The notes: generated by a model from the letters alone, not told the origin. Counted from the stretch's first letter, positions 18,801-64,000 are shown. The stretch is 64,000 nucleotides of DNA from Paragordius varius (GCA_964247055.1 OZ176051.1:13888001-13952000); one strand, 5' to 3'. Translations and numbers: made by a program.

Positions 18801-19457
18801 CGAGCCAAACATGTCACTAGTGCCTCCTATCATCCACGAACAAATGGGCTGGTACGGGTTATTTACACCTTAAAAGCACACTATAAATCGCTAACGGATA
18901 CTAAGCTGACTCCTGACAAAAAAATAAATCAAGTGTTATGGGGTTATCGCCCCGCCGTACATAGCGCCACAAAAGAGTACCCGTATAACTTATTTCTGAA
19001 AAGAAATATTAATACCTCCTTCTCTTGGGTTAGAGAAACACCCGCACAACACTTAGAGGACGACATAATACCCAATCAAGTTTTTAGACCGGACGAAGAA
19101 GTTTACATAAAGAATGAAATCAATTCAGGGTGGAGAAAAGGTTCAATTTTGGAGAGAACAGGGGTACTCTCGTACACGGTTAAAGATGGAAATCGAACAC
19201 TTCGCAAGCATGCGGATCAATTACGGCCGACCGGAGTCGAGAACGGCAGAGAGGAGGATGATAATTTAACAATAAACCGAACAGATGAAGGTATTACAAC
19301 CAATAATTGGAAGGTGGGGGAGGAACAACGCAAAGAAAAAGAAAACGAGAAAGACACCCAGTTTAAAATAAGAACGGAAAAAACAACTGAGAAAGAACCT
19401 GAAAGGAGATATCCTCTTAGGGAAAGAAAAGCACCAGATCGGCTCGGATTCGGATAA
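15897..19457 (+). pseudogene. Frameshifted gag-pol of the Mag-like element
   Basis: Gag MEKISLEAYDP; paired zinc knuckles CGKVH..CPASNKECYRCKLRGHFGRCC; protease LYDTGA; RT LLFGISSAPTIFQ and CLDDVIV; RNase H LETDTSNDGFGAVL; integrase H-H..C-C, WERIHLDIAGP, TDN, YHPRTNG. Split across >=7 ORF fragments by indels and stops. Confidence 0.93.
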
Positions 19458-31157: not shown

Positions 31158-34100
31158 TCATGCCTTGCCCCTTACATATGTGGGCGAGGGTGAGTTCCTT
31201 CTATCTGCTATATGATGGCTATTTGATTGGTTCGAAATGGTGTCGTAAATATCAAGATTTGTTTTTGATTTGTGTGTTTGGGTAAATTTTGTATTTATAT
31301 GATTGTTGTAATATGAGCGATGTGTTAACATTTCGGATCGTTTTAGCTGAGTTTTACTTTTTACCAAAGAATTTGAATTGGACGTTGTTTGTGCAAAGTT
31401 AGTCGTACATAGTTTACCATTTATAAGGCATTTCGGATTTTTTGACGGTTTATTTGCCAGTTTTTGCAGAGCAAATTTCGCATTCTCATTCTTCGCATTG
31501 CAAATATTATAGAGTATTGTTGTTTTGTTTTCGACTAATTGTGGTAATAATTTAATATATTGTTGCTCACAAGATACGTAATCTAATCCCTTATCTAAGA
31601 TAGGCTCGTATGAATTAAACCCAAATATGTTTATATCAACATAGTTATTTATCGAAAGATGTTCAATTATATTGTCAATATCGGATATTTTTGGTGATAC
31701 TTTTTCCTTTTGAAGGATTAAACCATCGGATAAATAATTATTTTTAGCGGCGAGGTTAGGTATTAATTCATGTTTTACTATTTGAGAAGTTATTTGGGAG
31801 CAGTGGTTAAAACTTTTTATATCACACGTTTTGGTATAATTGCTGTCAGGTGCATTTAATATTTGAGTAGGCAATTCTGTTTGATTAGTATTATTACAAT
31901 CATTTTCGAAATTTATTTCGATTGTTTGAACCTCTAAAGGTTCTGACGGATCAGTTTCCCCTATATTATCGGTAACAACGTTGATGTATTCGGTATTTAT
32001 GGTTGATATTGTCGCATTACACAATAAATTGTTTGGAGTGCTGTCGTCAGCCTCATACAACCATTTATGGCTTAATGCTTGTTTTGCTGTCATTCTTTTT
32101 CTGAATTTATAAATTATTTTTGATATAAAGTGATGAACTTATAATTAACCATTAAATAATAATACGATTTGATCTTTTCCGAAAATTTCCTTTAATTTAT
32201 AAATAAATTGTATATTCCTAAAATAAATTTAATAAAAATTGGCACAACTTAATATGTTAGGCCTCTTGGTATCTATTAATGAAATTTTTTTGCACGGATA
32301 CACGTTTTGATTACCCAAAATCCAAATTTAATAAATCTAGATTAAGAGAATTAACACTATAATCTTAAAGTTAAGGATTAAATGTAAAAAAAGTATACTT
32401 TGGATGCAGGACACACAATTTGCTAATAAAGTCAATAGCTTGAGGTGATATATCATCAAACAATTCTGCAGGGAAATCTAGGTTACCCATCGTTATGTTG
32501 AGATATGTTTCCTGTACATTTTCGATACCTGAACTTTTAACTAAGTTATTTGGCTTTGAAGATTTAGTAATATCTTCCAAAGAACTCCTGCCATTTTTAG
32601 CATTCACTGATGATACCTTTGAATTATCTGATGAGGACCCACTACATGACGAGGTTGAAGAAAAGGGAGAATGTCCCGTAAGAATAACGTATGTTAACAC
32701 ACCCAGACTCCACATATCTGTTTGCGTACTGAGCGCATCGTAATTCAGTACTTCGGGTGCTAATACATAATATACATATATATATATATATGTATATATA
32801 TAACAGGGGTAGTCATAAGTTACCGGTTGTACTAAAAGAATACATTAACGAAAAGTAGGCAGACGATTAATTTGCAGACCCCATTTAATTCATCTGACAT
32901 TAAACGACAAACACACACACACACACAGGCGTCTTATTTTTATAATTCAGTAATCATGTCGATGTGCTTGAATAAACATTTGTGGCAGTTGCTATCGAAT
33001 CAATAAAGCCGTTGAAAGTCATCGTTTGCTGAACGAAACATATGGTGAACATGCTCTATCAATTGACACGTGTGAAACAATGTTTCGAAATATTAAAAGT
33101 TGTGATTCAGAAAGAGTATGTCTTTGCTGCGAAGCTAAAGTGCAAGAGTTATTGGATGATGAATCAACTCAAACGTAACAACATTTGCCAGAAGTATTAT
33201 ATGTATAGAAAAATAATCAATAGATGCCTATGAGCAATGCCAAAGACCAAAAAAAGGTAAATAAGTGTCACATAATTCGTATGAACCAATTCAAAATCGC
33301 AAAGTTTGTGAACTCTTGCTCGTCCGAAAAAAATTTCGCATCGTGGCGGGTGAAAAGAAATGGCTATAAAGCGAAACGTAGTTTTCGCCAAGCCAGTTAA
33401 TCAACACCGATGCTAAATCACCTCTGCAGTGAGCTATGTTGTGTGTTTATGTGTATTATCAGCTCTTAGAATCCGGCGAAACCGTCAAAGGCTATTGCCA
33501 ACAAATGATTGATTTGAACTGAATAATTGAAAAAGACCAAATATGGCTAGATGACATGGTACAGAGTGTTACATGACAATGCTCCGTCACTCACACCAAA
33601 ACCATTGAAAGACTTGAGATCGTTTCAATGGGAAATTCTTTTGCAGCTACTAAACTATGTTAAAACGCCATCTGACTATAAATCTTCGCATCGATAGAAT
33701 ATACCCTCGCAAAGCAGTACTTCAATATCGAGACGTTGAACGGCTTGACGGATGGTTTTCCGCAAAAGACCAGTTTTTTCTGTAATTCATACAATACTTA
33801 AGACAAGGGCATAGAGTGTAGAAGCTAGCTGATGTACAATTTTTGAAATATAAATAATCGATATCCATTCAAAATTACAAGTTTTTTCCAGGTAAAAACT
33901 TGTGACTACACCAGATATAAATTATTGTTTATATTAAAAAACGCAAAGATATATTTTTACTAGTAACGGTATATACTTTGCATCATACCCAAAGATTGTA
34001 ATTTATTTTATGCGGTCACTTCAACTCAAGCACTAATGATACATTACCCTGCCTAACTTGTAGCATTTTTTTTAGAAAATATTCACGTCGTAAGAAAATA

Positions 34101-37100
34101 AATATTTCACAATCAAAAACATTAAAGAAAGATTCAGAAATATTTTATAGTACACGGTTTTTACCACAATATAGCAGTTTTCGCGATTATTTAATGTTAA
34201 CTCATAAGTAATGGTTGATAAAATATCTAAATTTTTAAAATCCAACTTTTTTTTGTGAACAAAAATAGGTTTGACTGTATGCTCCTATATATTAGTATTA
34301 CTTATTTATCTTTATGATATGATTAGTTAGGTTCATCAAACCATTTTTCTTAATCTAATCGCAGAGATTGAGATTTATTCTTATGTTATTATAAGATTTC
34401 TATTTGATTGATATTATTAAGGAGCCTATTTGACTAAATGTTAAATTATTATTAACTTTAATCCCTGAAAATATTATATTATCCTTAAAGTTATAGATTG
34501 ATTTGACATGTTTTTTGTGTGTGTTGGTTAAGCAGTAGAGAGGAGAACAAAACTCCAATTACTATTGCAGAAAAAAATAGATAAAATCGTAAAAAAATAA
34601 GTAATCTTTTCTAATCTATGGCATATTGTATCGATAATGTGCAGAACAGTTTTCCAATTTAGTACACCGCATGTGATTGATTTAAACCACAGAACTTACA
34701 ATATCAAGATTGATTTTAATTAATTAATATTTTTTATATACTGTGCACGGATAGATGTTATATTTGCAAATTTCCAATTTTAAATTAGTAATCCTAAGAA
34801 AGTTTTATCATATATATACATATATATATATATAGATAGATAAGGCTCAACATTTTTTATGGTAAAAAACGATATTAAACACATATTAAAATAAACTTAC
34901 CAACATAATCTGGAGTTCCGACCATTTCCCTAAAATCCATGGTTGAGCTTATAATGCGAGAAAGGCCAAAATCACAGAGTTTTACATTACCGTGGGGCAA
35001 GGGTGCAGTCAACAGAATGTTTGATGGCTAAGATATAAGCATTTAAATTTATAAAAACACCCATTTTAGGGGAGGAGGGGGTAGTTTGTAGAAATTTCCG
35101 TATAAAATATTTACACGCAAAATTCAAAAGTAAATGGAAACTATGTTATTAAAAAACACAATTTGCAACCTTAATATCCAAATGAACGATACTCAAATGG
35201 TGGAGATAGTCTAAGGCTTCAACCACTTGTTTAACAATGCGTTTCGAGGTCCATTCTTGGACAAGACCTCCTTCACATTGAGATGATGGTATAATTGTCG
35301 TTACAGAGGTATTTTCAGTCTTCTGAAAAGTATTCAAATCTGTACTTTTTTTCTTCTCTTGATTTATCTTATTTTCGCTGAGTACATCACTGAGAGATGT
35401 GAGATTATTTTGTATTAATTCACCACCCTTTGCGCTAAATTGTAAAAAAAATGTTTTATAAATCATTTTCAACCTAAAAAAATTTAAAAGTATCAATTAT
35501 TGTTAGATATGTAGGCGATGGATTTTTAATAATACGGTATAATTTAAATAAATGTTTTTCGCTAGATAAACATTATTTCCATATATTTTGAATAAATTAA
35601 AATCGTTCACCCTAAGAACTTCGGAAAAAATAACAAAAAATAATAGAAAAATTAATATGCTATATAATTTATTTTATAAGGTATAAGCATGTCAATTTAC
35701 ATTTTTTAAAATCATGCATAAAATTATACAAATGTATCCTTTATCCATATCCGATATGGTGTTGTCCCATATATATGCGACAGTAGCCTATTTAATTTTA
35801 GTTTTTTTTATTAACCTTTGTTTTTTTTATAATAAGGCAAAAAATTATACACAATGTTTAATGGCCTAATTATGCAGAGTGTAATTTTTTTTCCAAAAAA
35901 AATTAAAAAAAAAGTAGTCCGTCTACCGCGCATGCAAGTTTTACCTGTATACATTTTTATAAAAAAAAGAATTTGTTTTATACACAAAGTTTATTCATTT
36001 AATCGGGGCATTTTTCATGAAATAAAGAATGTCTCATTGGAGAGTCTTTCAAAAATTTTTGTTTATATGCTATGATAGGTGTAGGCTTAAAGATTATATA
36101 ATCTTTTACCAAGCGAACAATTAACATTTCTCTCTGTAAAAAAACCTTCAAAAAAATAAAATATGTAAAATGTTTTACTATTCCATAATAAGGATAATAT
36201 CTTGTGTCGTTTCATAGCAGGAATACAGACTTATGAAGCGTTCATGACCAGATAACATACAATGTATACGTATTTCATTGTCTACGGTGGCTTTGAAAAA
36301 GGCTTTCCCTCGCCTTCGTTTTCGGACAAATTTGGCAGCAAACTCTTGACCAGTTGCAATGTTTTGACACAACTTAACTACGGCAAAATGACCACTAAAA
36401 ATTATTAAACAAAATAATTTAATTTATAAAGATATAATTATAAAAAGTGTATTTATCAAAAAATATGGAAATATATTGCTAAATTAATGGTATTTCAGCG
36501 TATATTGATTTTCTATACGTAAAAAACAACACATTTAAGGTGTAACGCTATATTTTTCATTATTATTGTAAGGTATGTGAAATAATGAGATTTTCCCTTT
36601 TAAAAAATAATAAGTTGCAGCATTCAAAATATTTTGTGAAAATGTCCAAAGCACAATTTTATATAATATATTAAAATTATTACAATATTATATGTAATAT
36701 ATAACAGGTGTTGCACATATTTTAGTTAAACTTTATCTCTCTTATATAACGGTTGACCCAATATTTTTGCAAAGATTTTGACCATTCTGGATATTATTCT
36801 TTTAAAAATGAAGGCTGCAAATTAAAATTTGTTTGAGTTTAAATAATATAATAAAATTTTAATGCGTTTTTAAACTTCGAAATCCCGTTTGTGGAATTAT
36901 AACCTAGGATGTAATCTTATTTTGCAAAATATTCAGTTTGACATATAATGTATTTGATTCTTCATTTTTCATTCTCTAATTAAAAATCAATGGAAAAATT
37001 TATGATGTTTTGATAAACTAACTACTCAGTTATTACTTATAATTAATTACGAATAAATAAATATATATATCGAAAAGAGTGTGTTTTCGTCAATAAAATA

Positions 37101-48207: not shown

Positions 48208-51200
48208 ATGGTTTTTGGTTCAAAATTTAGCATTAATATTGACCGTTTTGATAAAAATTCTCCATATTCAACTTATGAAAACTATGCAATAACTCCAATC
48301 AATCAAAATACAGGGAGATATAAATTAAAAAAACTGCCAACCACATCTTCATCAATGCAAAAATCTAAAAGGGGCCGAAAACCGGTAGATAAATCTTCCA
48401 AAGTCTCAAATGTCTCAACTACTAACACTAAATTACTTCAATCTTATTCGCCAGAGGATTTATTTAGGCCCATGAAAAATCGCAGAGCTGACAAGGAAAA
48501 GGCTTATATGATGGAATGTTTGGAGGAGTATAGAAAAAGGGAACTTTCAAATAATTGCCCAATTGCATCAAAAAAGGACACCCTTAATACTCAGTCGCAG
48601 GGGTCAAACAGTCCAACAAAAGGTCACGAAGATGAGCTCGTGGCCCTTAAAAATTATAAGTTTTTCAAACCAACCAAAGCCATCATTGAAAAGCAAAATG
48701 TGAAAAAAGACAAGAAAAGAATGAGATTAAGTTATATTGAGAAAGTTGATGAACCACACCTCAACACTAAACGTCAATTTAGTGAAATGAAAGAAAAATT
48801 TTTTAAGCATAAAGAACTGTGTACACCTGATACGATTCTCGTTATAAAGGAAAACAATGAAATTTATCTTTTTGGCGATGATTCCAAGGTATATTTTAAA
48901 CATAGAATATTAATAGTTAACCCTTGCTAATTTTAATCATTGCCAGTTACAGTTTGACTAAGTACATATTGCTAAAAAGTTATTAATTATTGCCAAATTG
49001 CATATACAATAAAGTGGATTATTATTGGCTAATAATATATGAAAAAAATAACTATAAGCCAATAATACTGCCCTTTGTTGCATATGCTTTTGGAAATTAG
49101 TAACTTTCTAGCAATGTATACTTACTGTATTTCTATCATCCAATTGTTTTTGTTTTCTACCGTAAATACAATCAGGTATTAATTTAACCATTACGGTCCC
49201 ATGGATATTAATTTATTAACATATATGGCTCAGTTTATTAAAATAATTATACATCTGAATTTTAGAGATAAACTTATTCACTGGTTTTTTTGACTGGTCC
49301 AAAAACTACATAATATATAGTATTATAACCTCATTTAATTCATCAATAGATACTAACTGATTTTTTGTCATCATCGCAAAATCAAAATGAAAACAAGACA
49401 GCTGTCATGTATGAATCGTCTGCTTCACCTCATTCAAATTTACGGTATGTTAAATTTGGCTTGCAAAACTTTATTTCACATATTTGCCCAAAATTACTTC
49501 AAACGACCGAGCGGAAGTTGGCAATTTTGGATTGCATTTTGGCAAGGAATCACTTAGGCAACGAAAAGAAGCAGGATTCATTAATTTATCTTACGCCATC
49601 TACGGCCCTGTATAATTTGCATAATGAAATCATTCATCCTTTAGGTACTTTATCAGTCATATTGGTTGGAGAAGTTAATGGATGCGACTCTATAACTTTG
49701 ATGGTTACTCTTTTAATTTGTTTTTTTATTTTATCTTTAATTTTTTAGATATAACCTGATTACATAGATGTGAGGGTTGGGTGTCTTTTATAACAATTAG
49801 AATTGATATATTTTTGGTTGAAGCATTTTTAAAGGAATGTATGTTATCCAAAAATAGGAATGTTAATTGTTTTTACGATTTATATTATGTAAATAGGGAT
49901 ACTTACAGTAAAAATTGAAATTATACGGACAAAACGTAGACCAATACAAAGACAACCATACTTTTTTATTTTGATTTTATAATATAACTCATTGAAACTC
50001 CAAAGTATAATATAGAAATGTAAATTGGTAACATAATATTATATTTTAAGATTATAATTAAATGTTTTTTATGAGATAAATTAAGGTTTAAAAAGTATGG
50101 TTGTAAAGTTTTGTCTTCATATTTTTTATATTGTCCGTATAATTTCAATTTTTACTGTAATATTAATTTTTACATACAACCGCTTTCACATAATAGCTTA
50201 ATGTAAAATATTTGGGAAAAACATATGTATCATATGGCTAGATATTAATTGATTAAATAGGTTTGCCTTTGCGTTGTTATAACACATAAAAAATTGCTTG
50301 TAATTAATAAAAAATAACTATTTTTTTTAAAACCATATTTTTTGAAAAGTTTTGACTTACAGTAAGATTAATAAATGATCATCACGAAAAAAAACAAATG
50401 AATATCCAAAAGAAAAAATGATTAGGACATGATTAAAAAAGTATGTAATAAATATACCATATACTACCCTTGATGAATCCTTTCTATTGTATCTACTTAC
50501 ACAATTTAATATATTTTTTTAACCATGTGCTAAATATTTTTTTCTTTTGAATTTTCATTTCTTTTTTCGTAATAATCATTTATTAATCTTACAGTAATGT
50601 GTAACTATTTAATGTTCGAAATTAATTACCGTAGCGTATGATATAAAACAATATTACTCCATAGAAGAATTAATGATGTTTTATTTTAAAAAATAAACCT
50701 AGTTGTATATACACATATCCATTTTTTCTTCTATGGAGTAATATTGTTTTACTCCATACGCTGTATATAAATGTAATAAATAATTACTTTTTCAAGTTTG
50801 AAATTTCTTATTTTTTCCAACTAATAATGGTACTAATAATAGAATATCGATATATTGGCCCAAAGTCATGAAATATACGAATTCTCAGTACAAACCAGTG
50901 AAGATACCATCACCACCATTGGAAACAATGTGGAAAAATTATTAAATCATTGGAGGCCAGTCGAAATTTTTGCTACAGAGTTAGATGGATCTTATCCCTT
51001 AACTAAAATGATTACTGAACGAATCGACTTGTATAGCTTGGATAGGTATTTTAATTACTTTTTTTTAAAATAATTCAATTTTTTTATTAATCATTTACAG
51101 TTTAAATTCACCCTTCAACGATTCAAATTTATCCTTAAACAATTTAAATTCATTCTAAATAAATTATGTGCTTTTGAAATTAAAAATTACCTATATTTTT

Positions 51201-54200
51201 CTATATTTTTGAAAATTCAAATTTTGTTTAAAATTAAAATACTAAAAAATAATCTATGCCATAATAATATTTTTCATATTTATGATGAGTTATATTAGGC
51301 TGAAAACACATAATTTATTTTTAGGGTTAATTGGGTTCAAGGGTGAATTTGAATTGTAAATGGTATATTTTAATTATGATAAATTTATATTTATTATAGA
51401 TTTGAATGGGATAATACTAAAGTTAGAGTTAATCGCATTCCTATAATTTTGAATGGCAAAAAACGATTTGCCGATCAAGAAACCCTAATTATTGATAAGA
51501 TTTATGGTATCATTTTCATTTTTTACTTTTTTTATTCATTTTTTTAAGAGTTATAATTTTATTTTTTGAAATTATCAATGTATGTAAATCTTACCGATTG
51601 CTTAAATATATGTGAAATAATTAAAGTATTTTAATTAAAACAAAAGTTATGAACATAATCACTTCTTTTATAATATAAATCGAATTTTTAATCATTATTT
51701 TTCTGAAAATGTTTTTTTTAAACGAAACTATTATTATATTTTTTTTAATTTTCTGTTTTGTTTTAATCGATATATATATATATAATAAGTAAATTTATAT
51801 CTATGTTTCATATTTTCTATAAAAAATCTATTATAAATGTGTGTGGATCTTTCACAGCCCTTGCTATTAAGGATAAACCCAGTAAGATTCAAATAGCGCA
51901 TGAATTGGAACTTAATGTTATGACCGCGAACCATTTAAACATTTGGTCAGCCTACAACATTGTAATACAATTTTTGGATGAACTCAATCTACAATGTTTT
52001 GCAGATCACCTGTTTTTGCAAGTGAAACATATAACTTGTTTTTAGTTTATATATGTATAAAACACAAAATTTAATTAAAGCAACATTTTTTTACATCTCG
52101 ATTATGTTAAAAGAGAACTTATGTCGTTTTTAGGGAATAAATTATTAACACAACATCTATTTTTTTTAAAATTAATTCAAAAAATTAAAATTTAAATTTT
52201 TTTTCTTGAAATATTAGTTGTACTACCCCCTTATTTTTATTTTCAAACTGATTATTTTTATTTCAGGGAGGTCTAAATGCACCCATATTACATCCACAAC
52301 GTTGGCTTAAAACAACAATCATTTCACCTCATACACACTTGAGTCGAGTGACTAAACTTATAGTTTCTACACCTCTCAACGATGAATTCTCTAAGAATAA
52401 GAATAAAACTACAGCCCTTAAACGCGATTATTTTTCTTTCTTTGCACATAAATTGACAAATAATAATTCTTTTATACCAAAAACATATCCTGGCCATCTC
52501 GTCTTTTGTCATTTCCTTCGAGAACCGACGCAAGACTTAACATTGCTGGAGGAACGATTAGATATCGTTGGAGAACTCATTCAATTAAAAGTATGGCATA
52601 CAGTAAAAATTCAAATTATACGGACGACAAAACTTAAAAATATAAAGACAATTTTTTTTCTTCTAAAAGACAATGATACTTTTTTTCGAGCCTTAATTTA
52701 TCCTATTAATTAATTATAATTGTATAATACATAAGTTGCTTGTGTTATCAATTTACATCCTAATTTTCTACTTTATAATTTGAAATAATGGATTATATCA
52801 ATATTCAATAAGTATGCGGTAGTATTTTAGAAAAAATATTTGTCCTTATATTTTTACGTTTTGTTGTCCGTATAATTTTAATTTTTATTGTATTTGGTTT
52901 AGTTTAGGTTGGGTGATTTGCTTAACCATTTCACTTGAGACATAATATTCTCATTTGAAATGGTTTACCAAAAAGTGACTGTTATCGATAATTTTTGAAT
53001 GTAATTATAGATAATTATATCTGATTCAACATTTTTAGACATTTGCTCTATATATTTAAAAACGTAAAATTTAATTTAACATAATTTTTAACTATCATTT
53101 ATTAATTATTGATACAGTCTACAGCACCGCTGCAATGTTTAAACATCAAAAGTTTGCCCATAATAACTTCGTCGAATGCGTTTGAAAATGAACCTCGAAA
53201 TTTGTATACCTCGCTTCACGACATTTGTCAATTATGGTCGGGTTATTACGACCCTTATTCTAATTATTCCAAAAGCTTCGATAATAATATGAATAATAAT
53301 AAAATGAATAAAGAAGGACAAAGTTTTTATTTTGTTTGGTGTCGAATTATGTATGGATTGGCCAGACCGAACGAAATTTACGATTTATTTCAAACGCTGT
53401 TTTCATCATATAAATTGGCCCTTGAACTTGTGCGCGAGGAAATTGGTATTTTGCTTTTTATATATAAATTAGGGATGTTTTTAACATAAGAACCGAAATT
53501 ATACGGACAAAATGTAAAAATATAAAGACATATTATTTACTAAAAAAACCATACTTAAATCTTGATTTATTTCAATATAACTAATTCATTGTTTTAAATG
53601 GCAAAGTGTGAAATAGACATATATATTACTAAAACAATTAATTCTATATATTGTAACTAAGTAGCTTATATGGGAAACATTAAGGTTTTTATAAAGATTG
53701 TCTTTTATATAAAATATTTGTCTTTATATTTTTACGTTTTGTCCGTATAATTTCAATTTTTACTGTAAATGATTTCGCGGGTCGCATTTATATCATGTTA
53801 GATTTTAGTAGATATAAGACTGTAAAAACAACTACTATATTCGAAAAAAATTATCAATGTTCATTAACAAATTATGTTTAAGATAATAATTTTTATCTAA
53901 GATTTTATAAAAAATTTTGTATTTTAAAGTTGTTGAACACGCCCCCCCCCCTTTTTTTTTAAAATTCTATGTGTTGGGGTTTATTTACAAAAAACACTTG
54001 TAAATTCTCCAGTATTATTGAATCTTTTATATATATTCTAATTTAAATATGAAAGCGTTGAATTTTTTTAGTTTTACCATGGCGGTAAGCATTTATAATT
54101 TTTTACATCTCCCTTGAACACCTAAAAATAATTATGTGTTTTCAGGTGCAATTATAATTAGATTTAATTTTTTATAGCATAGTTTATATTTTTACCAGTA

Positions 54201-57200
54201 TTATGTTAATATATCAAACAAAATTCCACATTTTGAAAATATATAAAAATATATAGGCGCAGTTTTTTTATTCGAAAACACACTTTGTGTAATTAATTTT
54301 AGGGTAAATTTATGTTAAAGGTATGAAACTCGAACTGTAAATGGTATATAACGCTTCCTAAAAAAATTAGCAAATTTATTTTGCTAATAAAATTTAAATT
54401 ATGCATAACAATATTATTATTCATATTACAGTAAAACTGGAAATCATACACACAAAACGTAAAAATATAATGACAATTTAATTTTAAAAAAAGAAACCAT
54501 ACTTTTTTGAAACTTAATTTTTCTTATATAAACTATCTATTTAATTAAAATCCTAAAATATATAATTGATTGTGTTACCAATATACATTTCTAAGTCATA
54601 CTTTGAAATTTCAAACAATGAGTTTTATTTAAATTAATCAAAATTTATAAAAAAATATTTGTCTTTATATTTTTACGTTTTGTCCTTCCGTATAGTTTCA
54701 ATTTCTACCGTATTTTAAAACACACAACACAGGTGGGAAATTATATCATGAAGTATTGGCTAAAATTGTACATGAAATTACATACATTGTCAAACAACTC
54801 AAATATGATCTTATTGAATCTGGTCTAGTATCGGAAAATGCATTAAGGTAGGTAATTTTAACTAGGAATTCAATATTTTTTTCCATTTTTTTGTGTATTT
54901 TGCACATATTGAGGACTTTTTCGCTTTTTTGTCTGCATATTTTGTTTTAATAAACACTATCATATAATTTTAAAGTTATTTAAGTTAAAACTTAATTATC
55001 AAACACAATGTTCTCGTGTGTATTAGATAAATGAGCTTTTAATTTACACAGTTTTATTTTTAATTGAGTCTAAAAGTGGAAGGAATTATAAGATTTTAAG
55101 TTTTTTTCTGGTAAAATGTAATCTAAAATCTTGCTAAAGTTTATAATTATAATTTCAAACCATATGTCTGTTTTATTAGCCATGTGATTTATAAAAAAAA
55201 GCTATATAGAATAAAAATGGCGGCAAAAAAGTTTTTGAGTTGAAAATTTTTACATTTCATAAATAAATTTTTTTTATATGGATAATGCGCTTAAAAGGCT
55301 TGTTTTAAATATACGTGTTAATATCTTGAAAGATATTCAAATTTTCATCGCTTTGGGATATAACCCTAAATGGTCATAATGAAAAAATTGTTAATAACAG
55401 TAAAACTTTAACCTGAGTTATTTTTAAAAATATTTATAATTTACAACAACACCATCTTAATTAATAGAACCGCTATTAAAGTCAATATAATATCAAAAAT
55501 TTTGCAATTGTTTTTAATGATAACAGCACACTCTGAGAAATACTTGTAATTTGCGGATTTTACGCGGGGCAGGCAAAAAATCAGTTTATTGCGCGTTTTA
55601 AGTTTACAATAGCATACATACATTAATTAATATTGGATAATTTTGATATATATATGTATATATATAGAAAGAATATTAAAATAAAAATATGATATTTTTA
55701 TCGTATTTTATCTAGTTATTTTATCTATTGTACGTTTTTTATCGGAATCATTTCATTTTTTAACTGTAAATTTTACTTAAACCTTGATACTTTTGTTTTA
55801 TTTTTTTTGCATTTTGAAAAAATGCCCCCCCATAAATTTTTACTATCCTTTTCCAATCATTTTACTTTACATATATAATTTTTTATTAGAACTAACGATT
55901 TCGAAAACATTTTTAATCCCCCTATATTCATTTCACATGACAAAAACAATGTTAATAATGAGAATACCAATATCAAAGGAAGAGACATTTTACACGAATT
56001 TAGTCAATGCACTGTACCTCGGATATTGGAAATGCGTTTTTCTAAAATCTCACTCACGCATAACATTGAACGACACATTGAGAGTGTAATTTCAAAAACT
56101 ATGCTTGATTTAACACGTAAAACAATAAAACAAAAGCCAAAACGCTCTTCAGATGAATATGGTATAGTATATATCATTTTGCACTTCACCCTTAAACTAT
56201 TTAAATTTACCCACTCTTGAGCAATTCAAATTCATGACTCTGAAATAAATTATTTACTTATACCTTTTTAAAAAATAAAATTTTGGTTAAAATAAAAATA
56301 ATACTGAAAAAATAGTAAACAATGTCATAAAAATATATTTCAATGAGGAGTTATATTAGCCCAAAAACATATAATTTATTTTTAGGGTAAATTTGAATTG
56401 TTTAAAGGTCGATTAGAATTGTAAATGGTATATATTATATGGGTATTCATAAGGAATTTATTAGATTTCGCCATAAAATTGGAAAATGCAAACACACAAT
56501 AGCGCCTTTTATTTCTAGTTTTTGTCAATTAAACTTATTTAGAAAAAACTTGTTTAGGTTATATCGATCAATTTTAATAAGGTTTTATATAAGCGTACTT
56601 TTATAATTTATGGATTATTCAATTTTTTCAGGGTCGCAGCATACATAAAAAATCGGAATATATAACATTTATAATTCAAATTTACCCTTGAACAATTCAA
56701 ATTCACCCTAATAATAAATTATGTGTTTTCGGGCAGCTAATATAATTCATCATTAATAAGAAATGTATTCCTATGACTTAGTTTATTATTTTTTCAGTAT
56801 TATATTAATTTTAAACGTATTTTTATTTTTTTTAATCTAAAAAAATATGGGTAATTTTTAATCTCAAAAAAATACATATAATTCTTTCAGGGTGAATTCG
56901 AATTGTTGTTCAGGGCTATTGTGAATTTGAACCTGTAAATGGTATATCAAATCAATCACTAAGTTGTAAAAATATATGTTGTTTCTTTGATCAAAAACCA
57001 TCACATATCTCAATTTTTTAATTTGCTTATTTTTTATGTACAATTTCAATTTACAGTAAAAATTGAAATTTATACGGACAAAACGTAAAAATATAAAGAC
57101 AAATATTTTTTTCTAAAAGACAACCATACTTTTTCAAACCTATAAATTAATCCTAGGAAAATACTTAATAACAAGCCTTAAATATAATATATACATCTGT

Positions 57201-57511
57201 ATTTTATACTTTGGAAATAAAATACAATTAGTTAAATTTAAATTAATCAATGGTTGTCTTTTAGGGTAAAAAAATATTTGTATTCTTTATATTTTTACGT
57301 ATAATTAAAATTTTTACTGTAATACTCCGATGATTGTGATATCAAAAGATGAAACAACCCATTACATGGACCTGTATCGTGAAGAATGGTGCGAAAATAA
57401 TGCTGTGATGATGTATGGAACGAAAATTGAATCATTTGCATTCAAAATATCCAAGGCTGTAATCAAAGAAATGAACCCTAAAATGTTGCGAACATTAACA
57501 TTGTGGCGAGA

Positions 57512-57569
<58 letters not shown>

Positions 57570-60500
57570 ATTTAATTTTATTTTTTTTTATTGCTAAAAA
57601 CTGTCTAAATATTGTTTTTTTCATGCTTAAATCCGATAAATTTTAGGTTTAAAGATCATGCGTTTTAGTTTAAAATATTAATAGGGTTTTTTATGAGCTT
57701 AAAAATATAGTTGGACAAATTTTACCCTAAACTGACACATCGACATAACTGCATCTAATTTTTGTCGCATAATTATTTTTAACCAAAATATTCTATCATT
57801 TTGACCAAAAAATAATTTTTTAATATATATATACATATTTAGGGGTGTCGATTATAACCTGTATAAAGATGATAAGATTCAAAAATTTGAGCTAGAACTC
57901 CAAATATGGAGTCATGATTTCACAAGTGAATTTGAACATGCCTGGAAAACGTTTCAAATCTATCTTACGCAAAACTATGCAATACACTTCGAGTAAGCTA
58001 TATAATCAATCACATTTAATTATTTTAATAGAGGGACGGACATGATAACATTAGTAATACAAAGTTTCTAATTTCGGTTTTGCCCACACTTATAAACTCA
58101 CACTCATCCATTATTTGCAATAAAATTTGATTTTTTGGGTTAAATAAATTACTTTTTTTGCGCCCACCCTTATTTAACCTACCTAATTTTTTCGATGCAG
58201 TGCATGTGTTAGGTAGCAAGCAAACCCATTATTGGGAAAGCTTGATCATATTTTACTATATGGTTTTTCATGTATTTTTTGAAAAACATATTAAAAAAGA
58301 ATGGTATATATAAGGATTCAAATTTTCTCTAGATATAAAAATTATGTCAGGTGTCTACGACTACTGTTTATGCCAGGGATATCCAGCACAAATATCATGG
58401 CGGCATTGATTTATTTTAGCCCCGAATTATGGAAGAAAGATCTTTTAAACGGGATGCAAAGACCGACTCCCACCTGCTCGCGGGGCATCCTGGGTAACGC
58501 TAACGGAAGCGGCACTGTTTGTAAAGAACAGTCAATGAACATCAATCCACAAGGAGGAAAACTAGTGTGTGGGGCGTGGCGGAATTGAGATTGGCTGTCT
58601 CATTTTCTTACAAAATACCACAATGCTTGTATTCACACATGGTTGCGGATTTATCTGGGCGCTATAACCAGCAGCCAGATGATAATAACGAAAAATATAA
58701 GTTCTTAAAACAAAAGATGGAGTGGGAGCCAAAGCCCGGAAAGGCGCATACCTTGGCCGTACACTTAAATCTACAAACGGGTTGAGAGATTTGAAGGCTT
58801 TTCAGACACTCTCTAGCCTACTGGTACAGCGAATAAGGTACTCTCTCCTCCGAGTTAAGAGGTTGGCTATAAGGGTATATAGTCAATCAAGCCTCATTAC
58901 ATTTACCATGTTTAACAGCGAAATAATAATGAATAAATACTTTTCAAAAAGCGTCCTTTGAAACTTTTTTTTATTATATTTTTATACTGCATATTTTATT
59001 AGAAATAATATATCTACGGAAAAGAGAAATGTTGTTATCGGAGAAAAAATCCTTTACTAATAAAAATAATGACTTAAAATTTGGTACATGGAATGTCGGA
59101 ACCCTTGTTGGAAAAGCTTGGATGATAATAAATGCGATTAAAGAACAAAAACTTGATATATGTTGTTCAAGAAACACGTTTTAAAAACGGAGTTAACTAT
59201 CGACACGAAGGTTTCACACTTTATTATGAAAGAGGAAAATCAGGGAAATCTGGAGTAGCCATAGCCATAAACGATCAGATAAAAGAAAATATAATTGACA
59301 TTACACGTCACAACGATAGAATTATTCAAATGCGAGTGGCTCTCAATAATACCACCCTTAACATACTATCCATGTATACCCCTCAACAGGGTCAAAATGA
59401 AACTACCAAACAGGGATTCTGGAATCAGCTTTATCAGATTGCACAAAATGTTCCCACAAATGACATACTTCTGATCGGCGGAGATTTTAATGGACACATT
59501 GGAAAGCACGCTGTTTTTTATGAAGGAATACACGGTGGAGTAGGTATTGGCTCTCGCAAAAAAGAGGGCGAAACCCTCTTAGAATTCTGCAGTGCTGCAG
59601 ATTTACTGATTTGTAACACTCACTTCAGTAAAAAACCCAGCCAAATCCACACATATAAAAGCGGAAATCACACATCGCAAATAGATTTTGTGTTGTTGAA
59701 CCAGCAATTAGAAAAATTATAACTTACTTCAAAACTTATGAATATGATACACAACATAAACTAGTAGTTGCTTTTTTAATATTAAATAAGAACCGACCTA
59801 GCCCTAAAAAATTGCCTCAACTTAACATAGCAAAACTTAGTGATCCTATAACAAAGCATCAATGCATTAACCAAATTACATCTGAGCTAAAACATTCCCC
59901 TAACAACGTTGATGACGGCTGGGAGCATCTAAAAAACAATCTTCGCTCAAACGTTTTCCAAAATCTGGGGAAGAAAACGTGCGAAAACAAAATCTCAATG
60001 GTGGTGGCAAAGCTATATTAAACCCTTATTGAATGAGAAAAGAGATGCCAGAAATTAAAAACTTAAAAGTTTTTAAAACACTAAAAAATATTAATAGTAA
60101 TAAAAAAGATATTCGGGTAGTGAAAGCCATAAAAGATAAAAATAACAACACAGTTACTGACACTCTTAGTATTCAAAATGTATGGACACAATACATGCAA
60201 AATGCACTCCAGCATTCACATTTCGAAATACCAAACTTACTTCCAGTTATTGGGCCACCCCCAATCATTACTGCGGAAGATGTGAGCTTAGCCATGCAAA
60301 AATGTAAAATCAATATAGCATCTGGTCCCACGGAAACTGAAATGTACAAAAATATTCCTGAAGCAATTACCTATTTCACAGAGCTATTTAATCTAATTAT
60401 AATGGAGGAAAAAATCCCAAACGACTGAGTGTCATAATTCCAATATATAAAAGGCGACATGCTTAACTGCGCCTTCTACAGACCATTAAAATTACTTGAA

Positions 60501-63500
60501 CACGCAACCAAATTATTCGAAATTATTATAGAAAAGAAAATACGTCAGCTTTGCTCGATTGACGAAAGTCAATTCGGTTTCCAACAGGGGATCAGCACCT
60601 CTGACGCCATATTCTTTCTTAGAAGGCTCTAAGAGAACTACAGATGCAAAAACAAAACCTTATATCACATCTTTATTGATTTAAGCCGGGCATTTGACTG
60701 CATCCCGCGGTCCATGATCACATTCGCGTTACCAAAAACAGAAATTCCGGAATGGATAATAAAAATAATAAGCTTACTATATGAGAATACTACTAGTTGC
60801 GTGAGAACTCCCGTGGGAGATACCCATCAATTTCCAGTAACTGTCGGACTACACCAGGGCTCCATCCTCAGTCCATTACTATTTATCATTACTATGGATC
60901 TAATAACTGATAAACAGGTTTACCTTTCGAGATGATACGACATAATACTAAAAGCCACCAGCGAAACAGCCATCATCAATAAATATAACCTCTGGAAATC
61001 TACGTTAGAAAAATTTGGCCTCAAAATTAACACAGATAAAACAAAGGCTTTATAACAGGCTCACCAGTACCAGTAGTAAAATTCCCTTGCTCCATTTGTC
61101 ACTCTGAAGTGAAACTTAATTCCATCAAATGCACTGAATGCCAGCTGTTGGTCCATAAAATTGCTAACAAATCAAAGAAAGTTTATTAGGCATTGAAAAT
61201 TTTGTATGTAAAGCTTGTACAACACCAGATATAAACAAACAATCCCACACAAACTATCTGCCTCCCATCTATAAACATCGAGGTAGTAAACAAGTACAAC
61301 TACCTGGGCGACACAATAGCATTAAAAACGCTATAACAACACGACATCAAGCTTGGACCAAATTCCATCAATTCAAGTATATAATGAAACACAAACACAT
61401 TTCAAACCCAAACAAGGGTAAAATCTACACGATTGCCATTCGCCCTGCCCTCACATATGCTAGCGAATGTTGGCCCCTAAATCAAACTAATGAAAATAAA
61501 TTATGTGCAAAAGAAAGATAAATCCTCAACTCATGTCTCACCAATCAGTACCACAATGAAACAAATAATAATAAAAGCATACATAGTCTGTTTCATATCG
61601 TACCTATGTCTTCTTTTCTCAGAGCAAATCGTCTCAGATACTGGGGCCACATTGAACGCTCAAATGGTTGGATTAGCAAAATTAGATCCTTTCATCCGAA
61701 CGGCAATTTAAAACGAGGCAGACCATACCATGATTGGGAAAAAACATCAACCATGACTTACACTTAACTCAATTGACCAAAGACCACTGTCTTGATCGCA
61801 AGTTATTTCGCTCAAAAATATGGAAGCTAGCACAAGCTGGAGAAACAACGACTTGATGATTGATGAAATATCTTTTAAATATCCATCCTAAATTTTGATT
61901 AAAATCCATTTTTTTATTTTTTAACATTTTTTAAAAGAACTTTTGCCTGGTTCATGTGCTAAAAAAATCTATTTTCCTACACTATAATACATAAAATACC
62001 CACATTTCCGACCTCATAAAAGCTGCTTTAAAGGGAGGGATACTTATTAAAACCATTCTCTCTCCGTAATAATAAATCACGAAATTTTTTTACACTTTAT
62101 TACTATATAATAGATTATTTTTCAAAACGCTTGGTCTTTTGGATTGTTATATGTGCATGGCCCTTATATCAGGTCAACCTGGTTGGAGTCGGCCTTTCTA
62201 TATTCAACATTCAAAAATTTTACATGTAGAAGGTGGACATAATCCGCTTGTTGGACTGCCAAGTTTTATTTTTTTCGCAAATTATTTTTTTTGACAAATT
62301 TATATAGAAGAGTATTTTTTGATGAATATGAAATTCCATTCATGTGGTATTAAATCTGATAAAATAAACCAAATTGAAAATTATAATGTTTTGTTTATAA
62401 AGTGAATCCGTTTATAAAACGACAATTGAAAATGGCATAGTGACTGCATATAATAGCCTATCGCGTAAAAAGATTTGATCTTATTTGTTGAAAATTAGTA
62501 TATGATCAAATATCTACTTAGAATACAGTAAAAATTAAAATAGGTTTTTTCATGATATTTATATATATATATATAGTGTGCATTTTGATAGTTGCTTTAT
62601 TGACACTATAGTAGGGCAATTTTCAACAGGAACGTATGGAAAAAGAAAGGAAATAATTGTTTATATAACATTTTGTTTTGTTGTTTTTTTCCATAAACTA
62701 TTGTATTGCAATTGCCCTACTATAGTGTGATATAAGCAATCATTAAAGTGCATACTGTATATATAGGATAAATTTGAAATAACCCGTAAAAATATAAAAT
62801 TAAATATTTGTTTTTAAAAGACAAACGACCCCATATTTTTTTGAACTTTTATTTTTTTTCTTTGTATACTTATTTAATTACAATATTAAAACAAATACAG
62901 TATGAGTAAGTACACATTGCTAGAAAGTTATTGATTATTGCCAAATATAGTAAATACAACAAAGGGCAGTATTATTGGCTTATAGTTATTTTTTCACTTT
63001 AGCCTATATCCCTTTGTTGTATTTACTATATTTGGCAATAATCAATAACTTTCTAGCAATGTATACTTACTCATACTGTAATTTCATATTTTGCAATTTA
63101 AAACATATAAATTATATTTTTACTGTATAATCAAGGTATTTTAAAAAATTAGAGTGATCTTTAGAAAAATTTATTATTATGTTTTCAATTATTCTTCTTT
63201 TTCAAATATACCTTATCATATATATAGATGATTGTGTTACGAATGATACCCTGTTGGATATGGAGAATAGACCATTGATATTGCTTACGGGTGCACACGG
63301 CAGTGGGAAAAGTTCCTATCTCCTTAGCCTATTTCACATGGCCTGGTTGGCTCAAATAGGTTGTTATGTCCCTGCCCTGAAATATATTACAGCCACATAC
63401 GATGTTTTAGCCTACGTGTAATTATTGACTCTCTCTTTTATGCCTTATTTTACTAGATAATTTTAGGGAAAGGGCGAGGGCGGTGTGTGGTTAAAATTAA

Positions 63501-64000
63501 GTCGGAACGAATAATATGTGTGTTTGTTTGATTGATTATAAAATATCCATAATAAGGTGTTTTTAGCAAACTTTGAGTCATACATAGGTATATCATGTCT
63601 TTTCATTTTTTATATCTTAATTGATAAAATTTATCAAAATACAAATTTTTACAACGCTTTTCTACGTTGTTGTTATGAAAACTGTTTTTTGGAGGGGGAG
63701 GGGGTTCAAAAAGGTTGATTTATCAGGTTTTATGGTTCCGGCTTTAGTTTAAAATTCATTATATCCTTATAGGTTATCTGGAATAAGTAGCTCTAATACA
63801 GAAAACCATACAATGGCAGCCTATAATTTCGGCGGTGTTAGTCGAACCCTGAATGCAATTACACAAAATTCTCTTGTCTTTTTCGATGATAATTATTCCC
63901 AAGGCGTATATAATCATAATTGGGCTCAAACGAATTTGTCGTCTATGTCTTTTGAATCATTAAAGAGTTCATCTTTTAACTTGAGTTATGCCGCCTTATA
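48208..64000 (+). CDS. MSH3: Divergent MutS homologue, MSH3-like (3' end beyond window), >1140 aa
   Basis: Exons: 48208-48888, 49350-49703, 50843-51045, 51400-51506, 51858-52021, 52267-52590, 53118-53445, 54733-54847, 55890-56161, 57349-57511, 57843-57992, 62114-62262, 63228-63417, 63773->64000; phases consistent, no internal stop. Domain I-like RQFSEMKEK..PDTILVIK..YLFGDDSK; domain II VEKLLNHWRPVEIF; core FLREPTQDLTLLEERLDIVGEL; TLGLLDCYMCMALISGQPGWSRP; LHVEGGHNPLV; P-loop LILLTGAHGSGKSSYL..LAQIGCYVPA; NSLVFFDD. GKSSY and LFGDDS best match MSH3 (GKSSY, FFGEDA). Some donors (49704, 52022, 62263) and the 57349 acceptor are weak. Confidence 0.8.
49906..50157. mobile_element. MITE family A copy (MSH3 intron 2)
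   Basis: TA|CAGTAAAAATTG...TTTTTACTG|TA. Confidence 0.87.
50630..50765. repeat. Small fold-back palindrome in MSH3 intron 2
   Basis: AGCGTATG..AAAACAATATTACTCCATAGAAGAA / TTCTTCTATGGAGTAATATTGTTTT..CATACGCT. Confidence 0.8.
51091..51363. mobile_element. MITE family E copy filling most of MSH3 intron 3
   Basis: CATTTACAGTTTAAATTCACCC...GAATTGTAAATGG|TA. Confidence 0.8.
52601..52890. mobile_element. MITE family A copy, 10 nt after the MSH3 exon 6 donor
   Basis: TIRs and TA flanks. Confidence 0.85.
53493..53765. mobile_element. MITE family A copy (left end truncated)
   Basis: GAAATTATACGGACAAAATG...CAATTTTTACTG|TA. Confidence 0.8.
54429..54710. mobile_element. MITE family A copy ending just before MSH3 exon 8
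   Basis: TIRs and TA flanks. Confidence 0.82.
57054..57319. mobile_element. MITE family A copy ending ~30 nt before MSH3 exon 10
   Basis: TIRs and TA flanks. Confidence 0.85.
57513..57567. repeat. (TA)n microsatellite directly after the MSH3 exon 10 donor; one of many
   Basis: Other long (TA)n tracts at ~6985-7017, 15030-15054, 23762-23813, 28034-28064, 29454-29488, 41245-41272, 41668-41692 and 43048-43090. Confidence 0.95.
58451..58594 (+). ncRNA. HDV-like self-cleaving ribozyme at the 5' end of the RTE element
   Basis: P1 GGGATGC(58451-57)/GCATCCT(58485-91) with a G.U first pair; P3 ACC/GGG; L3 TGCTCGC; GG for P1.1 (58492-93); P4 ACGCT/GGCGT with a long insert containing hairpin ACTGTT..AACAGT; J4/2 GGCGGAA with candidate catalytic C58580; P2 CCGACTC/GAGATTGG. 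G1 coincides with the TSD boundary. Folded by eye. Confidence 0.8.
58451..61864 (+). mobile_element. Full-length RTE-clade non-LTR retrotransposon (decayed) in MSH3 intron 11
   Basis: APE endonuclease (LKFGTWNVGTL, QETRF, GVAIAI, IGGDFNGHIG, QIDFVL) and RT (YRPLKLL, QFGF, FIDLSRAFD, GLHQGSILSPLLF, IRPALTYASECW) in frameshifted ORFs ~59030-61700. TGAT/TGA-repeat tail. TSD GAAAGATCTTTTAAAC (58435-58450) / GAAATATCTTTTAAAT (61865-61880). Confidence 0.92.
62898..63078. mobile_element. Fold-back MITE family C (TA|CAGTATGAGTAAG...CTTACTCATACTG|TA)
   Basis: ~70-bp near-perfect arms; relatives at 48950-49127 and 44380-44496. Confidence 0.85.

Follow-up and report, generated by a model that had tools for sequence, protein, structure and literature searches.

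An MSH3-like gene with an open reading frame and eroded ATPase and domain I motifs in the horsehair worm Paragordius varius

Can a mismatch repair protein still be kept by selection when the motifs of its known activities are mostly gone, or is such a gene on its way out? This question is raised by a gene at the end of a stretch of 64,000 nucleotides from the horsehair worm Paragordius varius (GCA_964247055.1 OZ176051.1:13888001-13952000), here called the window. Nematomorphs are the sister group of the nematodes, which have no MSH3 altogether. Among the MutS homologues, MSH3 is to our knowledge the one that animals have lost most often, and we know of few cases where the loss of a core repair gene is seen in progress.

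Between 48208 and the end of the window, on the plus strand, 13 coding blocks with compatible phases join into a stop-free frame of about 1060 codons. A preliminary description had counted 14 exons and more than 1140 codons, numbers that we correct here. Its claim that the gene is intact holds: stops occur in the introns at 0.081 per codon, i.e. once every ~12 codons (12.4), and in this genome (27% GC) a random frame stays open for about 12 codons. The stop-free blocks of 249, 153, 132, 127 and 113 codons each have a chance expectation below 0.1 in the region. The blocks are listed below, where residue numbers refer to the Gordionus sp. m RMFG-2023 'DNA mismatch repair protein Msh3-like' (XP_065313592.1, P0001).

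Exon 1, 48208..48888 (+): start codon, low-complexity N-terminal region, motif shared with Gordionus and first MutS domain I strand (PDTILVIKENNEIYLFGDDSK); 249-codon stop-free block, z 11.7 against P0001 residues 1-143, donor AAG/gtatat.
Exon 2 (candidate), 49350..49703 (+): by position the rest of domain I, unrecognisable; 132-codon stop-free block (chance expectation 0.02), both ends phase-compatible; alternative start 49398, alternative ends 49644 or 49673.
Exon 3 (candidate), 50843..51045 (+): connector / domain II region; acceptor aataatag, phase 0; weak collinear similarity near P0001 residues 434-480 (z 1.9), by eye ILA...EI.Y.E and VEKLL...P.EI.
Exon 4 (candidate), 51883..52024 (+): bounds set by phase and by length match to Gordionus; similarity to Gordionus MSH3 not significant in the shuffle comparison.
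Exon 5, 52267..52590 (+): start of MutS domain III (PKT..G......EP..L...E.RLD.VGEL); strong acceptor tttttatttcag; z 10.5 against P0001 residues 562-658, Pfam MutS_III E 0.17.
Exon 6 (candidate), 53118..53429 (+): domain III; phase 0 at both ends, donor uncertain; 127-codon stop-free block (chance expectation 0.03), similarity to Gordionus MSH3 not significant (z 1.1).
Exon 7, 54696..54847 (+): lever region; acceptor ccttccgtatag, donor AAG/gtaggt; z 4.2 against P0001 residues 757-774.
Exon 8, 55890..56116 (+): lever / clamp region; donor uncertain; z 10.0 against P0001 residues 773-841.
Exon 9 (candidate, short), 57349..57412 (+): clamp region; start uncertain, placed by phases; EW motif by eye against P0001 at about residue 893, similarity not significant.
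Exon 10, 57843..57992 (+): lever returning towards the ATPase; donor CGA/gtaagc; z 9.5 against P0001 residues 903-944.
Exon 11, 62114..62262 (+): first ATPase domain strands, ending ...EGGHNPLVGLP; 64% identity to P0001 residues 955-993 (z 30.5), local MSH3 profile 37 bits.
Exon 12, 63228..63417 (+): P-loop exon, containing LLTGAHGSGKSS and ending ...YDVLAY; 59% identity to P0001 residues 1003-1060 (z 35).
Exon 13, 63773..64000 (+): cut by the window end; reads LSGISSS..HTMAAYNF..SLVFFDDNYSQGVYN; acceptor ccttatag fits the phase of the 63417 donor, with junction codon GT+G = V; similarity to Gordionus MSH3 near noise (z 2.7), no match in the PDB at E<=10.

Every motif string quoted in the preliminary description is present, at splice junctions with fitting phases. 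The junction of exons 7 and 8 rebuilds ...ALR-TNDFENIFNPP, to be compared with ...ALRQNNIENIFNNP in Gordionus. Several junctions are ambiguous, namely the ends of exons 2, 6 and 8 and the start of exon 9. Run X3, another sample, carries frameshifting indels at 49710, 49720 and 49741, just beyond the proposed donor of exon 2, and a stop at 48911 with dense changes directly past the donor of exon 1. An extension of exon 1 to 48915, which would restore the helix length after GDD, was rejected because of this stop and because 7/7 changes there are non-synonymous. The C-terminus of the gene lies beyond the window end (64000). Vertebrate MSH3 sits head-to-head with DHFR; no such open reading frame is found upstream between 36 and 48 kb.

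Since the modelled junctions are predicted from sequence, the true transcript might use other exons, in introns or past the window end, with a canonical signature and Walker B. A candidate intron start at 63906 (GGC/gtatat) could also end exon 13 early, so that the sequence after ...NYSQG may be non-coding. However, the phases fit, and the Walker A Lys and the Walker B Asp lie 75 residues apart, close to the 74 residues of human MSH3, which argues that the last block is a true homologous exon. A scan of stop-free segments in six frames with an MSH3 profile found no other canonical signature/Walker B exon from 47 to 64 kb. Furthermore, the exons with the degenerate P-loop, GGHNP and domain I strings show 43-64% identity to relatives in the parts that align. 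An artefact of the gene model is therefore very improbable.

The gene is MSH3-like, as had been claimed: its closest relatives are MSH3 proteins and not MSH2, MSH6, MSH4/5 or bacterial MutS. Among 1.84 billion representatives, the sole strong relative of the P-loop exon is XP_065313592.1 (E 2e-11), and this protein is firmly MSH3, with E 2.5e-106 against human MSH3, compared with 1e-45 for MutS, 8e-41 for MSH6 and 8e-34 for MSH2. In the PDB, the top match of the P-loop exon is human MSH3 (E 2.4e-4), first by a small margin. Searched exon by exon, Pfam recognises only MutS_V (27.4 bits on the single exon 12, where the whole-protein cut-off is 30.2) and a faint MutS_III; most exons have no match in Pfam, nor in a phmmer search of the PDB. 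These blanks reflect divergence and not missing homology.

The relationship to Gordionus is seen along most of the gene. Tblastn with Gordionus MSH3 gives six collinear matches, and eight blocks are collinear with a shuffle z of at least 2.7, while 5/13 blocks have no detectable similarity. In the part for domain III, lever and clamp, the blocks at 52252, 54696, 55879 and 57805 are collinear, and those at 53106 and 57309 unrecognisable. MAFFT scattered the unrecognisable fragments in the MSH3 alignment, and only the four fragments agreeing with the pairwise placement were used. Thus, the earlier claim that all MutS domains are present in order stands only as collinearity with Gordionus MSH3 for 8/13 blocks, and falls short in the exon-by-exon Pfam search. 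Two further features are common to both genes: a motif of the N-terminus, ...DLFRP..NRR..KEKA.MMECLE.YR..E in exon 1, and the junction preceding the P-loop exon. In Gordionus, isoforms X1 and X2 part at the position of the window junction 62262/63228, and the X2 model stops short of the P-loop exon. From the collinearity, the lineage-specific N-terminal motif and the common exon junction, the window gene appears to be the orthologue of Gordionus MSH3. A word search with the Gordionus protein (whole, and residues 60-370 of its N-terminal part) revealed no other nematomorph MSH3 and no Paragordius varius protein, so the clade is sampled by one species. Neither the exon 1 open reading frame nor the Gordionus protein had a match in the contig index.

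The identity to Gordionus MSH3 is ~30% over most blocks, which is about the distance between Gordionus and vertebrate MSH3 (28-29%). It can therefore be asked if the window gene is a fast-evolving paralogue, freed of the ancestral job by a second, canonical MSH3 elsewhere in the genome. The sharing of an exon junction and of a motif in an otherwise unconserved N-terminus speaks against such a duplicate, as does the single MSH3 locus seen in Gordionus. In addition, the X3 contigs over the exons show haplotype-level differences and no second family. We consider a diverged duplicate improbable, and the lineage-specific paralogue that the preliminary description had offered is not indicated.

The motifs that characterise the family are replaced at both ends of the protein, which confirms the earlier reading by direct inspection, by hhalign and by counts of invariant columns, i.e. 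those invariant in six non-nematomorph MSH3 proteins. In domain I, the tail of exon 1 reads ILVIKENNEIYLFGDDSK where MSH3 proteins carry ILxxECGYRYRFFGxDA, and the MSH3 element ECGY(K/R)YRFFG.DA is not found in the window gene. At the start of this domain Gordionus keeps 16/16 invariant columns and the window gene 5/16. Exon 1 can still be aligned to MSH3 domain I by hhalign over the first 30 columns (probability 87%, E 4e-6), while the second half is undetectable, exon 2 giving a probability of 0.07% and z -0.4. Pfam MutS_I matches neither exon 1 nor exon 2. As judged from these alignments, the erosion of domain I is specific to the Paragordius varius lineage and not found in Gordionus.

In the ATPase domain the replacement is uneven. 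Walker A is GAHGSGKS in place of GPNMGGKS, so that GxxxxGKS is kept and fits GxxxxGK[ST]; exon 12 also has a Cys where most relatives carry an aromatic residue before V/I-x-N-D. GRHP is GGHNP in exon 11, and the Arg of IFTRMG is lost. In exon 13, HTMAAYNF stands in place of the RSTFMEEL signature and SLVFFDDNYSQG in place of SLVILDELGRGT, i.e. the catalytic Glu has become Asp and GRGT is lost. Thus FFDD, HTMAAYNF and NYSQG are found where MutS domain V has its Walker B, STF signature and GRGT, although the Walker B Asp is retained. The statement that nearly every invariant ATPase residue differs was therefore too strong: GxxxxGKS and the Walker B Asp survive, as do 12/18 invariant columns in the Walker A exon.

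Gordionus keeps 13/18 columns in the Walker A exon, and 14/27 in the signature/Walker B exon, where the window gene keeps 5/27. The two ATPase exons preceding the last block are 59-64% identical between the worms. Both proteins have lost the STF signature and GRGT. By this count, half of the erosion in the signature/Walker B exon is present already in Gordionus, so that decay of the second half of the ATPase predates the Paragordius varius lineage. The substitutions are thus in part ordinary for the clade, a circumstance that had been named as fatal to the original reading. Gordionus retains a canonical domain I (Pfam 78 bits) together with GPNxxGKST, GGRHP, the Asp-Glu of Walker B, and ATH; of these, only the core GxxxxGKS and the Asp remain in the window gene.

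Is the gene still under selection? X3 is the sole comparison for pN/pS in exon 1, and among the differences listed there are 24, of which 15/24 fall at codon position 3; 11 are synonymous and 13 non-synonymous (pN/pS 0.32, p 0.006). Exon 1 is under purifying selection, and the gene is therefore not an old pseudogene. The neutrality check that had been called for is answered in the same sense, for exon 1 only. All indels among those listed in X3 (12/12) lie outside the modelled exons, and with no stop in ~1060 codons the marks of a pseudogene are not seen. Of the marks of a pseudo-ATPase, the loss of catalytic residues is seen, and selection in exon 1 only.

The main rival to a maintained gene is one sliding to loss. 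MSH3 would then be dispensable, as in nematodes and insects, the gene (near) functionless, and its frame open because the loss of constraint is recent or selection weak; the erosion would be plain decay and not adaptation. Most of the ecdysozoans and lophotrochozoans sampled lack MSH3, with repeated losses in ecdysozoans (PMC8438181), so that relaxed constraint before loss has to be taken seriously as an alternative to a non-canonical role that is maintained. The erosion affects DNA-binding and ATPase motifs as well as five whole blocks, and it increases stepwise, with Gordionus standing between other MSH3 proteins and the window gene. That both functional ends, domain I and the ATPase, are eroded looks like general decay and counts against a maintained protein, as do the repeated ecdysozoan losses (PMC8438181) and a degenerate old sense-strand retrotransposon in intron 10, just before the ATPase exons. 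Nothing of the first 6 kb is present in two runs presumed to be RNA, an absence in line with decay that is not evidence of silence. However, a frame of this length is not expected to stay open by chance at 27% GC. The last exon is near-random in similarity yet open, with its Walker A-Walker B spacing kept; the two preceding ATPase exons remain similar to Gordionus; no listed indel falls within exons; and exon 1 has both its low pN/pS and its excess of third-position differences. We regard a gene on its way out as possible, though rather unlikely.

A still-selected MSH3 without a canonical ATP cycle is ranked first as the most likely explanation. Specifically, we suggest, with about even confidence, that the gene is a nematomorph orthologue of MSH3, the specific subunit of MutS-beta, intact and selected and no longer able to act as a MutS ATPase or loop sensor of the canonical type. 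Since related animals have lost MSH3 repeatedly, an eroded MSH3 is a better fit than a novel type of protein.

According to this explanation, the protein would be translated and would retain a MutS-like subunit fold, with the P-loop strands and helix as its best conserved part. In solved MutS dimers, the strands and helix around the P-loop are the core and the dimer face of the ATPase domain, and pairing with MSH2 is probably kept. Nucleotide may bind, with hydrolysis poor or absent, and the ATP-driven clamp cycle for repair of insertion/deletion loops could presumably not be completed. From poor hydrolysis and an incomplete cycle it would follow that selection retains a reduced or non-catalytic role, such as partner binding or a function of the conserved N-terminal motif, in a lineage with what is probably a long-term relaxed constraint on MSH3. 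It can be speculated further that a MutS-beta subunit has been converted by selection into a partner or scaffold that is ATPase-dead and mismatch-blind, a change seen part-way in Gordionus and near the end in Paragordius varius, both within one phylum. We propose this only tentatively; if true, an animal would possess a natural pseudo-ATPase among its MutS homologues.

Comparison with known systems indicates what such a protein may still do. For ATP hydrolysis and loop recognition, canonical MSH3 requires the Walker B Glu, the signature Ser and the Tyr-Lys element of domain I. The window gene resembles the canonical MSH3 of MutS-beta (human, 3THW and 8OLX; yeast Msh3) in family and, to judge from the collinear blocks, in domain order, and its P-loop exon has human MSH3 as its best solved relative; however, all three of these elements are replaced. 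MutS proteins belong to the ABC-type ATPases and have two composite sites that are not equal. Asymmetric ABC ATPases have degenerate sites, for example with Asp or Ser for the Walker B Glu and with an altered signature in the partner. A site with an intact P-loop, Glu changed to Asp and a degenerate signature typically binds nucleotide and hardly hydrolyses it. In contrast to the window gene, where the DNA-binding domain is also eroded, asymmetric ABC transporters have one site that is catalytic by design. The Ser-Thr-Phe signature of MSH3 completes the ATP site of its partner, and its loss would also damage the MSH2 site. MSH4 and MSH5, the meiotic MutS homologues without domain I, have likewise abandoned the binding of mismatches and serve as clamps on DNA structures of other kinds. 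However, they retain canonical ATPase motifs, whereas the window gene groups with MSH3 and keeps a remnant of domain I.

The two horsehair worms can be seen as two stages. In stage one, Gordionus, the trans-acting signature and GRGT are gone. In stage two, Paragordius varius, the losses extend to the catalytic Glu, GRHP, the canonical residues of the P-loop and the domain I element for loop binding, with the frame open and exon 1 selected. If the protein is made, it would show by a natural experiment which functions of a MutS-beta subunit do not depend on hydrolysis. If no protein is produced, the locus gives a date for the loss of loop repair in a genome that is very rich in AT and rich in microsatellites, for which a characteristic excess of small indels at repeats would be predicted.

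The MSH3-like gene belongs, judged from its sequence, to a known family and is strongly eroded, and part of this erosion is shared within the clade. The window is AT-rich animal DNA (GC 18-39% in 2-kb windows), and an ORF scan finds 13 long stop-free blocks on the + strand from 48208 to the window end. Introns of the gene contain one stop per 12.4 codons; given this rate, the chance expectation is <0.1 for each of the blocks of 249, 153, 132, 127 and 113 codons. GT..AG junctions with compatible phases chain all 13 blocks into ~1060 codons, and the gene extends past the window. All junctions are predicted; the last four are unambiguous and several others ambiguous. It is highly unlikely that the gene model is an artefact.

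Predicted exons, each part of the phase-compatible GT..AG chain
48208-48888, +, exon 1
49350-49703, +, exon 2
50843-51045, +, exon 3
51883-52024, +, exon 4
52267-52590, +, exon 5
53118-53429, +, exon 6
54696-54847, +, exon 7
55890-56116, +, exon 8
57349-57412, +, exon 9
57843-57992, +, exon 10
62114-62262, +, exon 11, ATPase exon
63228-63417, +, exon 12, P-loop exon
63773 to window end, +, exon 13, signature/Walker B exon

Similarity searches were made exon by exon. Against 1.84 billion representative proteins, the P-loop exon has a single match well clear of the others, XP_065313592.1, the 'DNA mismatch repair protein Msh3-like isoform X1' of the nematomorph Gordionus sp. m RMFG-2023. This protein contains MutS_I (78 bits), MutS_III (59 bits) and MutS_V (168 bits), and matches human MSH3 with E 2.5e-106, versus 1e-45 for MutS, 8e-41 for MSH6 and 8e-34 for MSH2. 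Searched against the window with tblastn, it gives six collinear matches, and 8 of the 13 blocks exceed shuffled controls against it, in the expected order. The two genes have in common a motif, absent from other MSH3 proteins, within an N-terminus that is otherwise unconserved. The junction before the P-loop exon is also at the same position in both, at the point where Gordionus isoforms X1 and X2 diverge. Because of the Gordionus match, the collinearity, the shared motif and the shared junction position, we read the gene as the orthologue of the MSH3 of another, quite distant, horsehair worm. The predicted Gordionus isoform X2 (XP_065313593.1) equals X1 to residue 1002, continues for 30 different residues and ends, without the whole P-loop core; the break corresponds to junction 62262|63228 of the window. 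It is improbable that the gene is a diverged duplicate existing alongside a canonical MSH3 copy. In the protein collections searched, the window's own species has no entry, and Gordionus is the sole nematomorph with an MSH3.

The extent of the erosion was counted over invariant columns, i.e., those unchanged across six MSH3 proteins, whose sources are mammals, a mollusc, a plant and protists.

Invariant MSH3 columns kept in the two worms
Domain I start: 16 columns, Gordionus keeps 16, window gene keeps 5
P-loop exon: 18 columns, Gordionus keeps 13, window gene keeps 12
Signature/Walker B exon: 27 columns, Gordionus keeps 14, window gene keeps 5

Gordionus has GQSMGLSEW in place of G.STF..EL and DELGLSTSI in place of DELGRGTST. 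Since its signature and GRGT are already altered, these two elements, the first of them trans-acting, were lost before the two worms split. Gordionus retains GPNQSGKST, GGRHP, Asp-Glu, ATH and domain I, so it was in the lineage of the window that the catalytic Glu became Asp and that GRHP and the domain I element disappeared.

Read directly, the first of the three ATPase exons contains ...LDCYMCMALISGQPGWSRPFYIQHSKILHVEGGHNPLV..., the P-loop exon ...NDTLLDMENRPLILLTGAHGSGKSS...YDVLAY, and the last exon, with its junction codon V, V-LSGISSS..HTMAAYNF..SLVFFDDNYSQG...; all motif strings quoted in the preliminary description are present. Its statement that almost all invariant residues are changed goes too far: the gene retains GxxxxGKS, the Walker B Asp and the segment LAQIGCYVPA.KYIT. 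Conservation across the protein is highest in the two exons around the P-loop (59-64% identity).

Overall, the last block is scarcely more similar to Gordionus than shuffled controls are (z 2.7), and a PDB search gives no match at E<=10. Despite this, we take it as a true homologous exon, because the distance from Walker A Lys to Walker B Asp is nearly kept (75 residues, against 74 in human MSH3) and AITQNSLVFFDD aligns with ATSQSLVILDE. An MSH3-profile scan of all stop-free segments in six frames of 47-64 kb reveals no alternative exon with a canonical signature/Walker B. The tail of exon 1 matches the MSH3 domain I alignment (hhalign 87%, E 4e-6) and reads KENNEIYLFGDDS, where 8/8 relatives have ECGY(R/K)YRFFG.DA; in the block expected to hold the remainder of domain I, no similarity to domain I is detected.

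MutS proteins are ATPases of the ABC type and have two composite sites; solved structures of MutS dimers place the surroundings of the P-loop in the ATPase core and at the dimer face. With an intact P-loop and Asp for the catalytic Glu, the subunit would bind nucleotide at most, with slow hydrolysis. Most relatives carry, ahead of V/I-x-N-D, an aromatic residue that stacks on adenine; here it is Cys, and GRGT is also missing. The missing signature would weaken the partner's site too, and the loss of the domain I element would make MutS-beta-type loop recognition unlikely. Conservation persists in the N-terminal motif, in parts of the lever and in the ATPase core near the P-loop. We suggest, at about even confidence, that the protein continues to be produced and to pair with MSH2 in a reduced or non-catalytic role, and that constraint on MSH3 has been relaxed since before the worms split.

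The main rival, possible though doubtful, is that the gene is simply being lost. It is favoured by the common placement of nematomorphs as the sister group of nematodes. Frequent loss points the same way, as MSH3 is missing in most sampled ecdysozoans and lophotrochozoans, including C. elegans and Drosophila (PMC8438181). The earlier idea of an intact but catalytically eroded MSH3, possibly a pseudo-ATPase, is confirmed as an observation and partly supported in its interpretation; part of the erosion is shared with Gordionus, and gene loss is common in the clade.

Contigs of X3, a sequencing run of another sample under the same species label, differ from the window by 0.3-9% each. Selection was evaluated in exon 1, where the list of X3 differences is nearly complete. 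Of 24 differences there, 15 are at codon position 3 (p 0.01); 11 are synonymous and 13 non-synonymous at a site ratio of 1:3.7, i.e., pN/pS 0.32 (binomial p 0.006). All 12 indels listed for X3 fall outside the proposed exons, three of them just beyond the proposed end of exon 2. Just 3' of the proposed donor 48888, a 25-base stretch of the X3 contig carries seven changes; with read-through each of them would be non-synonymous, and one creates a stop. The open frame, the pN/pS of exon 1 and the indel positions therefore make an old pseudogene untenable and show that current constraint acts on at least the N-terminal exon; the comparison with X3 covers the first 6 kb of the gene, ahead of the ATPase exons. 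A search for RNA gave none: the listed runs that contain the stretch are not recorded as RNA, and two runs presumed to be RNA have no matches to the first 6 kb of the gene, which does not imply silence.

The 4.1-kb intron directly before the ATPase exons contains a degenerate non-LTR retrotransposon in sense orientation (58300-61850), with an endonuclease (Exo_endo_phos_2, E 2e-8) and a reverse transcriptase (RVT_1, E 2e-9).

Retrotransposon ORF pieces, split over several frames
59132-59719, +
60033-60425, +
60438-60932, +
61168-61518, +

As sense LINE insertions can shorten transcripts, the element may promote isoforms that lack the ATPase domain. At its 5' side is an HDV-like ribozyme candidate (58449-58516, +), which scores only 23.9 bits with Rfam HDV_ribozyme (gathering score 50; E 0.53 in a 1-kb search) and would be the retrotransposon's own 5' ribozyme, not a feature of the MSH3 gene; across the whole window, Rfam gives nothing at or above gathering score. 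Short intronic repeats at ~49808-50207, 51008-51407, 52608-53007 and 53408-53807 are covered by contigs at hundreds to thousands of times the exon depth in two runs, with hundreds of joints and recurring read-through peptides such as IFVFIFLRFV, and look like a very abundant MITE-like family. A palindromic element, with arms ...attattgccaaat...caaagggcagtattattggc... and their reverse complement, is present in two copies, at 48940-49130 (intron 1) and 62900-63070 (intron preceding the P-loop exon). A (TA)n-type microsatellite (57515-57570; IYIYIY / YIYIYI in all frames) separates exon 9 from exon 10 as part of their intron.

No DHFR gene was found head-to-head with the MSH3 gene among the upstream ORFs (36-48 kb). 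Other features of the window, with gene identities assigned by eye, are:

6159-6602 and 13197-14009, -, SLC6-type transporter exons
16564-19457, +, LTR-retrotransposon pol ORFs (protease, reverse transcriptase, RNase H, integrase-like), GC 36-39%
31158-36372, -, Ser/Thr protein kinase exons, nearest upstream neighbour of the MSH3 gene

Over 48208-54207, X5, a run labelled organism B, has low-depth contigs identical to the window and, at 48557-48602, also a second haplotype resembling X3; the run may come from the same species or an infected host, or its sample may be mislabelled.
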